The notes under the pieces are model-generated. The model saw only the letters and a program-made list of their open reading frames with translations. It was not told the DNA's origin and ran no database searches. A program made the translations under genes and the position numbers. 64,000 bases of DNA from Entomortierella parvispora E1425. Its lineage: Eukaryota; Fungi; Mortierellomycota. The first letter of the stretch is position 1. Each line of letters begins with the position of its first letter. The DNA lies in NCBI GenBank assembly GCA_020891255.1, contig BQFW01000014.1, positions 1,674,001 to 1,738,000 of the forward strand. Direction: 5' to 3'. Positions 8,689 to 19,633 of this stretch are shown piece by piece.

Positions 8689-10389
8689 TTAGTCCTTTCG
8701 GAACAGGAAGAGTCCCTTGATGCTGTCATTGTCAAGAGCCTTTGGACTCGACAACAACGCCCTCACCAAAAGACCGCGGGCCACATCCTTGCGACCCTGA
8801 CGGAATTCTGTGACAATTTCCTCAACCACGGATGAGTTTAAACTGGAGATGGTGTTCTTGATGGATCCTAACTGGGCTTGGAGACTACGTCGCAAAATAT
8901 CCGGCTGTGGATTAGACAGACGACTCGAGAAGAGCTGTCGTTGTTGGATAAAAAATTGCGCCAGCTGCTGAAGCCGTTGCTCCTGCGTTGGAAGCGGCGC
9001 TTGCGGATTGCTCGATTGCGCTCCAGTCGAGATCAAGAAAAGAGTCGAAAAGTTCAGCATCAGCTGGGGCAGCATGTTGGTCAAAAAGACCATCATAAAG
9101 AGCGCCAGCGGACGTGTTCCCGCCGTTGGAGAAGAGGCCACTGGAGAGGAGGAGAGCGTCAAGGTCCTTTTGCGACTGTTGTTGCAAAAAGGCCGACAGC
9201 TGGTCTCCATCCTGTTCCGAGTAGCACTCTGACTCGACAGACGGGCTTCCCTGTTCAGACTCTTGGTCTTGCTCATCGAGGTCATCGTCGTCATTGAATA
9301 AACTCGTCGGTGTTTGTTGGAGTTGGAGGTTGTCGTGTGAAAGTTTCCCTTTGATGGAGTCAGCTTCTGCTGCGGAGAGTTGGTCAAGATGTTACTCTTG
9401 GCCTTCTTTGCCAGTACTGCAGACTATTGAAAGAAAAGGAAGAGGTTAATTAACTGTGCTGCTCCAAAGACAGATGGATGGATTTTGCAACGGTTGGATA
9501 TATTTTGCAGTACCTGGCAAAAGCCGACCCCGGGTTGGTTGTTGATGGTGTTCTCGTCGTTGTGGTTGTTCTTCTTGATATCGTTATCGTTGTTGGTGCT
9601 GACGACGCCAGTCATGGACATTGTCATGGCCAACTGTTGCTGCATTAGTGAAAACTGAGCAGTGAGGGTCTCCAGACGTTGAGAGAGGGACCGGTTGTCA
9701 CTCTCCACTGTCTTGAGTCTCTTCAACAGTTGGCAGTTCTCCTCCTGAAGGGTCTCGTTCGAGGCTTCAATCTCTGCGACATACTTGCGCTTCTTGTCTC
9801 TTGATTCTTGGGCCGCTGCTCGGTTGCGGAGGACACGCTCGCGAGCCTTGGCATCCTTGTCCATGGGGTCAGCTGCTGAACGCTTTCGACTGCTGCTATT
9901 TGAGCTGGCAGCCGATGACGATTCGGTAGAAGTAGCAGCAGCATTGGACGAGGCACGGCGGGCCTTGGAGGTCTTGGTCGAAGCGTTGGATGGCTCGGGC
10001 ATGTGGGTCATGACCGGCGACTCAAGCTTGAGGACCATAGGACTGATAGAGGGAGAGGTTGACCAGTCCGAAGACGAAGAAGAAGAGGAGGAGGTCATGG
10101 CAATAATGCTAGGGTCACTTGAGAGGGAAAGGTTGAGGTTGGAGGAGAGCGAGGCGGTCGAGGCCGAGTCCATCAACTGACTCAGCATAACGAGCTGCTG
10201 CAACTCTTCCCGGGTGGATGTGGATGTAGATGTAGAGGCTGTGGTGGTAGAGGAGGGGGTTGCAGAGGGGGTTGTCGCGGATACCTCGCTGTCCAGGTCT
10301 GCGTTGGACACTTCGCTGTCAAAGGGAGCATCAGCTGAAGAGGCATGGGCCATCATGTGTGGCAAAAGGGGAAGCGTTGTCGAGAACAT
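8689..10389 (-). CDS. HAC1: HAC1/XBP1-family bZIP transcription factor (UPR regulator). Exon 1 10389-9514, spliceosomal intron 9513-9424, exon 2 from 9423. Unspliced form ends at 8689 (about 536 aa); IRE1-spliced form ends at 8912 (about 446 aa)
   Basis: Basic region 'KARERVLRNRAAAQESRDKKRKYVAEIE' plus leucine zipper matches the HacA/XBP1 type; IRE1 cleavage loops and a frame-shifting 47-nt intron lie downstream. Confidence 0.92.
9373..9419 (-). other. Unconventional (IRE1-excised) 47-nt intron
   Basis: Bounded by CUG|CAGU and CCG|CAGC 7-nt loops; 47 mod 3 = 2; removal joins the bZIP exon to a stop-free acidic frame ending at 8912. Confidence 0.88.
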
Positions 10390-10623
10390 GATGGCCCGGA
10401 CAGAGGAGTCGAAGTTAAAGAGGGTTTATATAGAGGGGAGGGAGAGGGGGGCAAGGCTACGTGTCAAGAGGAGAAGAGAGCAGACAGGACAAGAAGGGAG
10501 AGCAGGGCGAGCAAGTGAAGGTCAAGAAGAGAGAGAGAGAGTGAGAGAAGTAAAGAAGAAAGGGAGTATGTGCCGTCGTGGCATTATTATAGAGGCAGCA
10601 GCGGGAGGGGCGTCGCTTAAGGG

Positions 10624-16667: not shown

Positions 16668-19633
16668 ATAGGTGCAGTGGTGGTCGTGGTCTTGTTCATG
16701 TACATAGCAGGGACCGCGGCTGCTGTGCCTGCCATCGCGGCGGTTCGAGTAGCGTCCAACGCTGGATTCGTTGTGGTGGTGCTTGCAGTGTAAGGGGTGA
16801 CAACGGGGCCCGAGGCATAATTCTGTGCGGTGGTCGAGATCGAAGACGACGTGATGGGGTGGACATCCGCGGGCTTGAGAGTATACTCGACATGCTCCAA
16901 AGGCTTCATGGGAGCAGCGGTGGTGGTCGTCTTGGGGGTGGAGTACTGCTGGGTCGTCGTGGTTGAAGGATGGGCCAAAGAGGCAGCACCCATAGCGGCG
17001 GCACCAGTGACAGCTGCAGCGGTTCCTACGACGGGGGCAGTGACCTTCTCGAGCAATGGCTTGTGGGCCTGATCTTGAAGAGTGGTCGTGGTGGTAGTGG
17101 TCTTTTGCATGACGGGAGCAGCGTTCACCGAGGTTGCGGCAGTCTGAATGTTGGCTGCTGGAGCATTGGTGTTCATGTACCGAGTGTCAAAGACAGGCGG
17201 GGCCACAGGAGCAGGGGCATTGTGTGTACCCTTGTCAATAGGCGTGAGGACTTGTTGCTTGATCCCTGTGGTTGCGGTATAGGCGGCAGGGGCTGCAGCG
17301 GCGGCAGCAACCATAGGAGCAGCAGAAGAGTGGTGGACATGGGCAGGGGCTGCAGCTGTGTTCGATGTCGTCTGAATGGAGGCAGGGGCGCCATACGACT
17401 GAGTGGTGTTGTTTGCCAAGTAAGCCTGGTGCTCCGTAGGAGCGGGAGGCATGGTATTGTCAACAAGTCCAGACCCAAGCTGATGCTTGGGAGCAGATCC
17501 TTCCTTGTCTAAATACGTAGCTACGCCTGCGGCCGTTCCGGCAGTGGCCGCCACAACAGGCGCCGCCATCCTGGAGGCGGTCGATGTGGTGTGGACGGCA
17601 GGAGCAGCAGCGGGTTGAACCATGGTCGTGTTGAGGTGCAATGGAGCGGACTGATGGTGCTGAGCGTTGTACTGTGAGATGGGAACTTGCTCAGTCTTGT
17701 TCATAGTCATCACAGGTGCAGCAGAGGTTGTGGCAATGGTGGCCGTGTTGTGAGTGACAGGGACAGTGGCCTCAGCAGCAGGCTGGTGATGGTGGTGCAC
17801 AGCGGCAGCACCTGCAGCGGCGGTACCTGCAGCTACAGCTGCAATTGCAGGGGCAGCTGCAGTGTGGAGAGGAGCGGCGGTATGGCCAGACTGGATAGGA
17901 GCTGCAGTAGACTGGATCGGGGCGTAAACAGACTGGACTGGAACAGCAGACTGGACTGGGGCAGCAGCACCGTATTCTTGCTGAGCCAAAAGAACGCTGG
18001 CCTGGGTGGCAGCAACCTGAGCAGTTGTGTCGCTATCAATCTTTTGGTGGCTAGTGGTGGTGGTGTCGTGATGGAGCACGTTTTTCATCTTGTCCATGAA
18101 GGACTTCTTGCGGCGACCTGGAGCCGTAGCGGTAGCAGTTGTAGTGGCAGTGGCGGGAGCAGCCGAGGACTGCATGGCTAAGGGAATAGCAGCAGCGGCC
18201 ATAGGAGCGCCGTTGTACTGCTGGGGCTCTTGGTGCTGGTACGTGTTTGTGGAGGTCTGGATGGGATGAGAGATATCAGTAGGAGGCTGTGCAATGGGGA
18301 TTTGCTTGGCAGGCTGATTCCACTCTTGACTCTGAGTAGGGGGCTGTGCAATTGGGATCTGCTCAGTCGCGGTTGTAGTTGGAGGCTGGGCAATGGGGAT
18401 GCGCTGAGCCGTGGTTGTTGTCGGAGGATGAGCAGTTGGCATTGAGGCCATCGTGGTGTGAGAGATTGACTGCGATGCAGGGGCGTCATGGTGCTGGTGA
18501 GCAACTGCAGTAGTTGTTCCAGTAGCAGCAGCACCCAGAGCGGCAAGGGTTGCACCAGCGCGAGGGTTGTGGTGACCAGCAGAAGCATGTGCAGATGCTG
18601 CGGAGATCTCATCTTGGATCTCGGTCTGAAAAGAATAAAAAACTCATCAGTTACAGTGTTGCATGGGATGTTTGTTCCCTAGACATAGTTTGCTCATTGG
18701 ACTTACTCTCAATCCTGAATGAGTACGGGTGACATCAGCAGGGGCTGCAGTGGCCATCTGAGTAATGGGAGCCGAGGCGACGGCACCAGGAGCAGTGAAG
18801 GACTTTTCGACATGATCTTTCATAGGACTGTTCTGACCATAGGGACTTCTATCAAAGTCCTCTGATTTGGGGGTGGAGACCTCACGCTCATGGGAACCAT
18901 CGTTCCAGTTAGTGACTTTCACGGGGCCAAATGGATCCGCGATCGTCTTTGGAGAATCGGCCACAGGGACCGCACCAGCAAGTGCACGCTCGGACAAAGG
19001 TCCTGGATGAGTCGTAGCGCCAGGGGAGTCCAAGTTGCCAAAGGTGGCCTTGTCGCTGGGCTTCATGGCGTGAACAGCAACCTTAGGAGGAGCACGATCG
19101 CCTGGGTTCATCTTTGCAGAGGAAGCGACGCCAGTCGCAGAAATGTTGGCCTCATGGCCTTCCTGGTGAACAGCGTGCTCCTCATCACCGTGATGGATCA
19201 GCTTCTTGGTTGCAGCAATTACAGATGCACCCGCGGCAGCAGCTCCGGTGGCTGCAGAAGAGACACCAGAAATGACGGTGTTAGTCAAAGAAGGGCGGCG
19301 AGCATGGCCAGTTCCGGTACTGGAGACGTTCAAAGTGTTATCAGAAGTAGATTTGTGGTTCGAACTCTTCAAGCTGTCAGCAAGATGCTCCTTAGCCTGC
19401 TCCAGTCTGTCACTGCTGAAGGGGGAGGGGGCGCCACCCATGGTAGGTCCTGCCACCTCAAAGGCAGACCCATGAGGGTTGACAACATTCGAGGCTCTCA
19501 AGGGGGTCGCGGTCGAAGCACCTTGGTTGCCAACAACGGCGCCCGAGAGGTTGGTGTTGTTGACGTAGGAAGCATCAGCGCGGTTGGACTTGAATCCACC
19601 GGGCATGTTGAGTTTCTCGTCTTCACGCTGCAT
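15893..19633 (-). CDS. Very large Ala/Thr/Pro/Gln-rich intrinsically disordered protein (about 1219 aa), 2 exons (19633-18707, 18625-15893)
   Basis: A GTAAGT donor at 18706 and a TTTTCAG acceptor at 18626 join the 328-aa and 852-aa ORFs in phase 0; internal repeats; short ordered-looking C-terminal motif 'PIPQLRPGEELVWLKTITTTEVY'. Confidence 0.75.
16490..16695 (-). repeat. About 39-bp coding tandem repeat (QQQQQYTTTTTAP, x4) with a poly-Q expansion
   Basis: Repeated plus-strand unit similar to 'gctgctgagtaggtgcagtggtggtcgtggtgta'. Confidence 0.8.

Follow-up and report, generated by a model that had tools for sequence, protein, structure and literature searches.

Among the unconventional introns of the IRE1 type, that of HAC1 in Saccharomyces cerevisiae is 252 nt long, and those of hacA/hac1 in ascomycetes are minimal, with roughly two half-loops and a few bases. 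In metazoan XBP1, a 26-nt intron lies in a bifurcated stem-loop whose loops follow C(C/U)G|CAGC (Peschek et al. 2015, PMC4687415), and the S1-ES1 zipper of XBP1 has been demonstrated experimentally (PMC4687415). The intron has 20 nt in hacA/hac1 of filamentous ascomycetes and 19 nt in Candida albicans HAC1 (PMC6222058). Cryptococcus HXL1, which has been described as a divergent bZIP that does not belong to the Hac1/Xbp1 sequence family, has a 56-nt intron (PMC3154848). For Rhizopus arrhizus, an early-diverging fungus, a HAC1 candidate of 149 amino acids (G6F37_009984) with a non-canonical intron supported by RNA-seq was described in 2024 (PMC10946435). In yeast, base pairing between the HAC1 intron and the 5' UTR prevents translation, and an element in the 3' UTR targets the mRNA (PMC11077094).

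We analyzed a 64-kb stretch of DNA from a Mortierellaceae fungus (the window), in which an IRE1-type element had been predicted from the sequence. Very probably, the gene that carries it is the HAC1/XBP1 orthologue of this fungus, and its mRNA is processed twice, by the spliceosome and then by IRE1-type excision. The element is a real member of the HAC1/XBP1/bZIP60 class and is closest to XBP1. As the original prediction had supposed, the searchable literature holds no description of such an element in the Mortierella lineage; it might be listed in the survey of Hooks & Griffiths-Jones (2011).

A spliceosomal intron inside the hairpin

The gene and all of its features lie on the reverse strand. 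Exon 1 of this HAC1/XBP1-type bZIP gene (9514..10389) is an open reading frame of 292 codons that begins with the ATG at 10389, and Pfam places bZIP_1/bZIP_2 at amino acids 178-238. Orthologues from other Mortierellaceae were found with E values as low as 1e-82, and the PDB matches of the protein were to CREB/ATF only. Exon 1 is followed by a spliceosomal intron of 90 nt (9424..9513; GT..AG, phase 0). The joint made by its removal (9423 to 9514) was present in contigs from four of four metatranscriptomes, with a depth of zero within the intron.

The IRE1-type element is at codons 285-308, shortly 3' of the part that codes for the leucine zipper. The spliceosomal intron interrupts the 5' strand of the element's 5' hairpin, between CAG and U, and it is found at the identical position in ten genera of Mortierellaceae, with lengths of 90-181 nt. 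Before nuclear splicing, the transcripts of this family do not have the 5' IRE1 hairpin. Public annotations of the gene contain only unspliced or chimeric proteins, which are named "hypothetical" or "hy5".

Loops and stems of the element

Once the spliceosomal intron is removed, two 7-nt loops stand 47 nt apart, together with every stem that the original prediction had listed, and all of its coordinates and strings were confirmed in the sequence. The 5' loop is CUG|CAGU (9422-9416), with the cut site between G9420 and C9419, and the 3' loop is CCG|CAGC (9375-9369), with the cut site between G9373 and C9372. Both loops have C-3, G-1 and G+3, with the cut site after G-1. Cutting after G9420 and G9373 would release an unconventional intron of 47 nt (9373..9419).

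In the spliced mRNA, the 5' loop is closed by a hairpin of 9 bp (UUUGCCAGU / ACUGGCAAA), the S2 arm. Its 5' strand, UUUGCCAG, is in exon 1 at 9521-9514, and its exon-2 part (9407..9423) comprises U9423, the loop, and ACUGGCAAA at 9415-9407. The 3' stem-loop, S3 (9366..9378), has a stem of 3 bp, UCU/AGA. The outer stem had been given as 9 bp, joining 9531-9523 with 9364-9356; these pairs are present, and U9522:A9365 extends the stem to 10 bp. This central stem, S1, is formed by GGGGUCGGCU (9522..9531) and AGCUGACUCC (9356..9365), which pair in the minimum-energy fold as well as in the constrained one. Inside the intron is a further hairpin (9382..9403; GG.CAAGA / UCUUG.CC). Finally, the ES1 "zipper" strand, GCAGAA (9365..9370), pairs with UUUUGC at 9522-9517 and lengthens S1 to 15 bp.

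The loop motifs by themselves are not unique. The pattern of CTGCAG, 32-60 nt, and CNGCAGC occurs five times in the window, versus 0.46 expected, and the other four of the five fall in a CAG-rich tract at 17.3-17.9 kb. The case for the element therefore rests on the stems, the conservation of the element across genera, the frozen synonymous sites, and the RNA junctions.

Predicted folding

For an mRNA contig of the unspliced form from a relative, the folding z-score is -4.0, and for a natural contig of the spliced form it is -4.6; in neither case did any of 200 shuffles match. Folding had been proposed as a check on the element, and it upheld the 5' loop and S1, but the canonical twin-loop fold is less stable than the predicted minimum by 2.4-3.7 kcal/mol and S3 is weak. 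The 5' loop is displayed in the minimum-energy fold and in the constrained fold alike (its closing pair has a probability of 0.64-0.93 across species), and the full 9-bp S2 forms in the constrained fold only. The closing pair of the 3-bp S3 has a probability of 0.004-0.09, and the 3' site is paired in the minimum-energy fold. The ES1 pairing is already present in the minimum-energy fold of the uncut RNA.

In the predicted fold of the spliced product, ES1 and S1 together form the only helix. In all 10 species, this is predicted to be a 15-bp helix (with one mismatch in Dissophora) that leaves the restored CUGCAGC in a 9-nt loop. An exon-exon helix of about 15 bp after cleavage was part of the original prediction, and it corresponds to S1 plus ES1 of the zipper model for XBP1 (PMC4687415). 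The inner hairpin is predicted in every species; the excised intron alone folds no better than shuffles (z of -0.1 to -1.7). When the genomic region and two mRNA contigs were scanned with Rfam, no HAC1/XBP1 family was found, and all matches were at the level of chance.

Conservation across Mortierellaceae

Both loops are kept in 10 of 10 genera, and the unconventional intron is 41 (in Dissophora), 47, 53, 59, or 62 nt long, which is always 2 mod 3. Variation in the loops is confined to the N positions of CNG|CNGN, while C-3, G-1, and G+3 are invariant. The exon-2 part of S2 is invariant except that either U or C stands at loop position +4, and S3 is invariant except for loop position -2, which is C, G, A, or U depending on the genus. 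These changes at N positions alter amino acids of the unspliced frame (P/R/Q/L and V/A). The variable pairs of S1 remain paired (A:U/G:U and U:G/U:A/C:G), with a single A:C mismatch, in Dissophora.

Synonymous sites in the element are nearly frozen. Among codons for invariant residues, just 1 of 16 varies synonymously in the element, versus 39 of 45 in the bZIP domain, and the frozen sites include the stretch of exon 1 that encodes PGVGFCQ, which is read in one frame only.

The inner hairpin is paired in 93% of cells, with one double change, and species-specific insertions lengthen its stem. With S3 included, 95% of cells pair, mostly at invariant positions. A comparison with orthologues had been suggested for this element: the loops and stems were found to be kept in all 10 genera, but a formal covariation test of the inner hairpin plus S3 did not reach significance, as 308 of 500 shuffles did equally well.

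Two C-terminal reading frames

As predicted, loss of the 47 nt would shift translation into an acidic, stop-free frame that ends at 8912. This spliced-form frame (8912..9372) has 154 codons, a net charge of -25, the motif ELFDSFLDLDW, and a TAA stop at 8912-8914. The acidic tail is kept in 10 genera with a conserved stop, and its acidic blocks are under purifying selection. The tail is presumed to be an activation domain.

The unspliced-form frame (8689..9423) has 244 codons, a charge of +23, and a stop at 8689-8691, and it is open in 10 of 10 genera. It codes for a hydrophobic segment (about 9022-9111) and, near the C-terminus, for a conserved helical block (8746-8865), as compared in an alignment of 18 sequences. 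The hydrophobic segment has a Kyte-Doolittle hydropathy of 1.6-2.0 in all 10 genera, and from this window to the C-terminus there are 91-134 amino acids. In the 40 codons that are read solely in the unspliced frame, dN/dS is 0.24, versus 1.4 in the other two frames. In the hydrophobic block, dN/dS is 0.41 in the unspliced frame versus 1.89 in the spliced frame. Judging from this selection, the unspliced frame is evidently translated, and downstream of the 3' site the dual coding is genuine.

An AF2 model of the unspliced tail, whose mean pLDDT of 50.6 is low overall, has helices at residues 104-132 and 190-220 (pLDDT of 77-87 for the latter). For this tail, we found no similarity to arrest peptides and no match in Pfam or Atlas, and for the two C-terminal tails together, Pfam, Atlas, and the PDB gave nothing usable.

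RNA evidence for both excisions

The original prediction had proposed looking for the spliced junction in RNA data, and we found this junction, TGCCAGTCTG-CAGCAGAAGC, in two RNA-derived contigs. Written around the join, it reads ...GCCAGUCUG|CAGCAGAAG. A contig from a soil metatranscriptome (X1, contig 7) joins 9373 to 9514 with AGA between, so that both the 90-nt and the 47-nt segments are removed. This contig, which comes from this gene or from a close relative, has 149 nt, 23+3 nt on one side of the joint, about 95% identity, and a depth of 3.8, and joints of this kind can mislead. It is the sole instance of the spliced form for this gene itself. The other contig is a Logan transcript of 1697 nt from a relative of Mortierella alpina (L130). 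It lacks both a 91-nt and a 62-nt segment at the same junction, and the spliced form is the only one assembled at the site.

The unspliced form is commoner, both among contigs and in protein databases. The depths in X1 (3.8 vs. 10.9) do not give a splicing fraction, since the two contigs are not identical in sequence and could represent separate strains. Among proteins, just one transcript-derived spliced form was found (P0007), and it carries the acidic tail; three NCBI protein models enter the spliced frame via predicted introns. We also scanned metagenomes with a 17-mer that is unique to the spliced mRNA. Among the matches listed (at least 120 loci), there was no spliced form; these matches were 119 chance matches and one genuine mRNA contig of the unspliced form (L015).

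Proposed mechanism and alternative explanations

In the scheme that we propose, the spliceosome would take out the 90-nt intron and unite the two halves of the 5' stem, which would create the 5' IRE1 stem-loop. The substrate would then be a bifurcated stem-loop with S1 (10 bp) and the arms S2 (9 bp) and S3 (3 bp). IRE1, presumably in the cytoplasm and under ER stress, would cut after the G in both 7-nt loops. The 47-nt intron would depart with its own hairpin, while S1 would hold the exon ends and ES1 would zip into the 15-bp helix, and a tRNA-type ligase would rejoin the ends. Because 47 is 2 mod 3, a basic tail of 244 amino acids with a hydrophobic segment would be exchanged for an acidic tail of 154 amino acids. 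We infer the role of IRE1 as the nuclease, the dependence on ER stress, the ligase, and the order of the two cuts.

The RNAs that lack the 47 nt could instead be artefacts of template switching by reverse transcriptase, or of misassembly, at the GCAG that is common to both cut sites and lies across a stable hairpin; the element would then be kept by the overlapping frames. This 4-nt repeat at both boundaries, the strong local structure, the finding of just two spliced-form contigs, and the real dual coding downstream of the 3' site would all fit such an account. Nevertheless, we consider it very unlikely: L130 was assembled at the site solely in the spliced form, the frozen synonymous sites extend into the single-frame part of exon 1 (PGVGFCQ), variation falls precisely on the N positions of the IRE1 consensus and changes the protein, and the frame that results encodes a conserved acidic domain with purifying selection and a conserved stop.

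We see hardly any chance that alternative splicing by the spliceosome removes the 47 nt as a non-canonical intron, even though fungal introns of 45-60 nt exist and a canonical intron lies nearby in the same gene. The possible registers of the boundaries are CA..CG, AG..GC, GU..CA, and UA..AG, and because none of them is GT-AG, GC-AG, or AT-AC, this is not a canonical spliceosomal intron. A conserved branch site and polypyrimidine tract are absent, the Dissophora version is 41 nt long, and both cuts fall at the same position of CNG|CNGN loops of 7 nt, which is the signature of IRE1. It is just as improbable that cutting by IRE1 leads mainly to RIDD-like decay of the mRNA, with minor ligation and with the unspliced-frame protein as a functional regulator. 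Such a regulator would account for the clear purifying selection on the unspliced frame and for the predominance of the unspliced form in contigs and protein databases, but not for the spliced frame, which is conserved, acidic, and selected up to a conserved stop, nor for the perfect conservation of the S1-ES1 zipper for ligation, and a full-length ligated transcript exists. Excision by IRE1 followed by ligation is our preferred explanation.

Implications

Mortierellomycota are oleaginous, are used in biotechnology, and are plentiful in soil. Our results extend a known mechanism to this fungal lineage and supply a defined UPR switch for it, whose exact junction can be assayed. They also correct the gene model, as the active factor would be the spliced form of 446 amino acids. 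Through the conserved spliceosomal intron within its IRE1 hairpin, the gene offers a natural example of a cytoplasmic RNA-processing signal that only nuclear splicing assembles. Furthermore, a culturable fungus has an XBP1-like set of traits: the metazoan loop consensus, the S1-ES1 zipper, and an evidently translated unspliced form with a hydrophobic segment. With such a fungus, it becomes testable how IRE1 substrates came to the ER in the fungal-animal ancestor.

We think it possible, if somewhat doubtful, that early-diverging fungi use the logic of animal XBP1u and plant bZIP60u rather than that of yeast, so that a translated hydrophobic segment brings the ribosome-mRNA complex to the ER for IRE1. 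Behind the hydrophobic segment that would serve this targeting, the protein continues for about 100 residues, which include the conserved helical C-terminal block. This reading is based on selection on the unspliced frame in 10 genera of Mortierellaceae and on the layout of a homologue from the chytrid Rhizophlyctis (L132), which has twin CAG|CAGC loops 17 nt apart and an unspliced frame of 208 codons with a hydrophobic segment 90 amino acids before its end. If it is true, then co-translational targeting would be ancestral to fungi and animals, and the yeast system of a 3'-UTR element and a translational block would be derived.

Comparison with known systems

Homologues from the Mucorales (Phycomyces and Choanephora) share the bZIP and a GFC(Q/D)S-A motif at the 5' site. 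Unlike in Mortierellaceae, their unspliced forms are short (149-184 amino acids), with a stop soon past the 5' site. In Phycomyces, a candidate 9-bp hairpin with the loop CAGCACG (non-consensus at +3) is followed 204 nt downstream by a 3' CUG|CAGC. It is plausible from these motifs that the two form an IRE1 element, whose predicted fold is unremarkable. In contrast to our element, no spliceosomal intron interrupts the candidate hairpin, and excision of the candidate intron, of about 204 nt, would preserve the frame. Cryptococcus HXL1 is also a fungal gene whose unconventional intron is of medium length and 2 mod 3; by its published description, it differs in lying outside the Hac1/Xbp1 sequence family.

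The gene described here resembles ascomycete hacA/hac1 and C. albicans HAC1 in that it encodes a bZIP in a fungus, has two loops of 7 nt, and contains a short intron whose removal shifts the frame. Unlike in hacA/hac1, the intron in Mortierellaceae is longer, has an extra hairpin, and is accompanied by a long unspliced frame under selection; we know of no report of a spliceosomal intron within the hairpin of ascomycete hacA/hac1. S. cerevisiae HAC1 has twin loops of the IRE1 type and likewise exchanges its C-terminal tail for an activating one. However, the intron in Mortierellaceae (41-62 nt) is too short for a block via the 5' UTR. We found no sign of a yeast-type translational block: local structure takes up the whole intron, and purifying selection acts on the unspliced frame.

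The closest system is XBP1. The Mortierellaceae element differs from it in that the intron is 41-62 nt long and contains a hairpin, S2 has as many as 9 bp and is split in the gene by a spliceosomal intron, S3 is very short (3 bp), and ES1 plus S1 is an unbroken 15-bp helix that is favored already before cutting. Also, the hydrophobic segment is 91-134 amino acids from the C-terminus, versus about 50 in XBP1. At about 50 amino acids past this segment, we found no arrest peptide of the XBP1u/bZIP60u type; basal plants with at least 100 amino acids after the hydrophobic segment are likewise without stalling (PMC11077094). In several other respects the two are alike. Both have the same loop consensus, a central exon-exon stem (S1) with two arms (of which S3 is a weak candidate here), and a short intron that is 2 mod 3. 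In both, the ES1 zipper would remove the restored site from a 7-nt loop after excision, and in both, an unspliced frame with a hydrophobic segment (whose translation we infer here from selection) is lost upon splicing.

An IRE1-type splicing element in a bZIP gene

The gene lies on the minus strand, and translation and Pfam identify an open reading frame that starts at an ATG at 10389 and encodes a bZIP domain at amino acids 178-238 (bZIP_2, E = 6e-10; bZIP_1, E = 9e-8). Upstream of this domain, the Ser/Thr-rich region is hypervariable between strains or species: in a root metatranscriptome (X2), a related contig has 68 other nucleotides in place of the 65-nt stretch at 9927-9993.

A 90-nt spliceosomal intron (9513-9424, minus strand, GT..AG) directly follows codon 292 (CAG, ending at 9514). 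Once it is removed, the mRNA contains a 5' hairpin (UUUGCCAGU / ACUGGCAAA) with the 7-nt loop CUG|CAGU, an inner hairpin (GG.CAAGA / UCUUG.CC), a 3' loop, CCG|CAGC, with the closing stem UCU/AGA, and an outer stem in which 9531-9523 pairs with 9364-9356 and which can be extended to 10 bp. Cuts after G9420 and G9373 lead to the loss of 47 nt; the spliced reading frame (minus strand) then continues for 154 codons to a TAA at 8912-8914, and the encoded protein has 446 aa and an acidic tail. The original prediction described these hairpins, loops, and outer stem, as well as a stop-free acidic frame ending at 8912, and all of them were recovered in the sequence with every coordinate correct. The observation is confirmed, and its interpretation as an IRE1-type unconventional splicing element is very probably right.

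RNA evidence for both splices

We aligned the contigs of four metatranscriptomes (soil, root, and peat) to 8800-10500. In all four, a contig skips exactly 9424-9513, and the 90-nt spliceosomal intron is real because the depth within the skipped interval is zero. The metatranscriptome run X1 includes a contig of 149 nt, at a depth of 3.8, that consists of 9251-9373, then AGA, and then 9514-9536. On the mRNA strand it reads ...UUUUGCCAG-UCU-G|CAGCAGAAG..., so that it lacks the 47 nt as well as the 90-nt intron, and its junction is the one predicted. A sister contig retaining the 47 nt has a depth of 10.9, but the two contigs differ in sequence and we do not take their depths as a splicing fraction.

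A second, independent case comes from the protein database, where P0007 is the translation of a 1697-nt Logan transcript contig (L130, from SRR33245415) whose DNA at the site is GGAGCCGGCUUUUGCCAGUCUGCAGCAGAAGCUGGCUCC. L130 aligns to the genomic locus of M. alpina (L002) in two blocks, and the 153 nt that it omits correspond to a 91-nt spliceosomal intron and a 62-nt IRE1-type intron; L015, a JGI contig, represents the corresponding form, in which only the 91 nt are missing. Together with the X1 contig, this places the double-spliced mRNA in at least two data sets and two species. Thus, the junction left by the predicted 47-nt deletion, or by its 62-nt equivalent, is present in RNA-derived contigs.

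Conservation across Mortierellaceae

We compared the orthologous loci of nine other genera (Gryganskiella, Mortierella (two species), Podila, Linnemannia, Lobosporangium, Entomortierella, Dissophora, and Actinomortierella). Loops and stems were expected to be conserved in orthologues, and both loops are kept in 10 genera, as CUGCAG(U/C) on the 5' side and C(N)GCAGC on the 3' side, where position -2 is any of the four bases. The IRE1-type introns are 41, 47, 53, 59, or 62 nt long, each 2 mod 3. Among codons for invariant residues, synonymous differences are found at 39/45 in the bZIP domain, 1/9 around the 5' site, and 0/7 around the 3' site. Both loop nucleotides that vary fall on N positions of the IRE1 consensus, where they alter the encoded residue. 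By these comparisons, the frozen synonymous sites and the N-only variation are what selection on an RNA signal would produce, and not what selection on the protein would.

In the 5' IRE1 hairpin, the spliceosomal intron (9424-9513, minus strand) splits the 5' strand after CAG and before U. It lies at this one phase-0 point (CAG^U) in all 10 Mortierellaceae genera, with lengths of 90-181 nt and unrelated sequences, so the IRE1 substrate exists only once nuclear splicing is done.

The bare twin-motif pair occurs five times within the window. Four of these occurrences are chance matches in a CAG/CTG-rich tract (17292-17968), so the pair is not diagnostic alone. The motifs are insufficient by themselves; what suffices against chance is the combination of stems, gene context, pattern of conservation, and junctions in RNA.

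Outgroups

The homologues from Phycomyces and Choanephora stop shortly past a conserved GFCDS-A motif. In Phycomyces blakesleeanus (L131:3067-3290), the equivalent 9-bp hairpin is uninterrupted and its loop is CAGCACG (C not G at +3). A candidate CUG|CAGC site lies in frame 204 nt downstream, and the annotated 184-aa protein has its stop within this interval. Phycomyces and Mortierellaceae share the junction motif FC(D/Q)S-AAEA. Rhizophlyctis rosea (Chytridiomycota; L132:2939-2962) has twin CAG|CAGC loops on stems of 5 bp and 4 bp, and the 17 nt between them are a candidate IRE1-type intron; the frame after it is acidic, and the unspliced frame of 208 codons includes a hydrophobic window that lies 90 aa before the end. 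Neither the Phycomyces nor the Rhizophlyctis homologue has a spliceosomal intron in the hairpin, which suggests that this intron was gained inside the Mortierellaceae or at their base.

Predicted folding before and after cleavage

When the whole element is taken from a natural unspliced-form contig, its fold has an energy of -52.9 kcal/mol (z = -4.0). In ten species, the predicted minimum-energy fold differs from the textbook twin-loop form: it has a 15-bp helix (GGRGYCGRCUUUUGC / GCAGAAGCUGRCUCC), a 4-bp stem below the 5' loop, and a paired 3' site. The canonical bifurcated stem-loop (10-bp S1, the central exon-exon stem; 9-bp S2, the 5' arm; inner hairpin; 3-bp S3, the 3' arm) can be enforced at a cost of 2.4-3.7 kcal/mol. 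The closing-pair probability is 0.64-0.93 for the 5' loop and 0.004-0.09 for the 3' loop, and the two folds compared imply that the 5' loop would be presented in both conformers and the 3' loop in the minor conformer only.

After excision, whether computational or natural, the RNAs of all ten species are predicted to form a single 15-bp hairpin with a 9-nt loop, CAGUCUG|CA, in which the restored CUGCAGC lies outside any 7-nt loop. An uninterrupted exon-exon helix of about 15 bp had been predicted, and the natural spliced contig folds accordingly (z = -4.6). In the proposed check by folding and covariation, formal covariation is weak (most pairs are invariant, there is one double change, and 308/500 shuffles are equally good). 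The excised intron alone showed no unusual stability when folded. The inner hairpin is found in every species with its distal part swapped for unrelated self-complementary insertions, which is suggestive but not countable statistically.

The unspliced reading frame

In mRNA not spliced by IRE1, the frame extends for 244 codons (8689-9423, minus strand; stop at 8689-8691), overlapping the spliced frame for ~150 codons and then continuing for ~74 more. It is open for 209-278 codons in 10/10 genera and its tail can be aligned throughout in 18 homologues. The unspliced tails are basic (+16 to +29), versus -21 to -29 for the spliced tails, and have a hydrophobic window (about 9022-9111; Kyte-Doolittle 1.6-2.0) 91-134 residues before the C-terminus. 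AlphaFold gives the unspliced tail low confidence overall, with helices across the hydrophobic segment and a confident C-terminal helical block (pLDDT 77-87). Neither tail matched a known family.

Past the stop of the spliced frame, a 40-codon block (8746-8865), which is the conserved helical one at the C-terminus, has a dN/dS of 0.24 in the unspliced frame and ~1.4 in the other two. Within the overlap, sliding-window dN/dS is a mosaic: constraint falls on the spliced frame in the acidic blocks and on the unspliced frame in the hydrophobic block (0.41 vs 1.89 in the spliced frame). These substitution patterns mark 8689-9423 as a second coding frame under selection. Given this constraint and conservation, the unspliced mRNA is very probably translated, as are XBP1u and bZIP60u, and unlike that of S. 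cerevisiae HAC1 (PMC11077094).

Comparison with known systems

The original prediction noted no known description of this element in the lineage, and we found none for Mortierella in the searchable literature, with the 2011 survey by Hooks and Griffiths-Jones lying outside coverage. For Rhizopus, a 2024 paper reports a likely HAC1 whose intron is non-canonical (PMC10946435). The NCBI models of the orthologues (P0001, P0004, P0012, P0005, P0023, P0024, and P0045), which are named "hypothetical protein" or "Transcription factor hy5," are unspliced-frame proteins or chimeras made via invented introns, and none of these seven is the spliced form.

By its sequence and predicted structure, the element fits the definitions of the IRE1-spliced class, and its nearest relative is XBP1. 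Uncut XBP1 is an equilibrium of alternative conformers, and a zipper strand (ES1) extends S1 after cleavage (Peschek et al., PMC4687415); our predicted folds resemble it in both respects. Compared with XBP1, the Mortierellaceae intron is longer and includes an extra hairpin, S3 is very short, the S1-ES1 helix is uninterrupted, and S2 is split by the structure of the gene. Co-translational targeting of the XBP1u kind is a possibility for early-diverging fungi. The ~50-aa spacing of XBP1u and its arrest peptide are missing from the unspliced tail, whose spacing resembles that of basal-plant orthologues without stalling.
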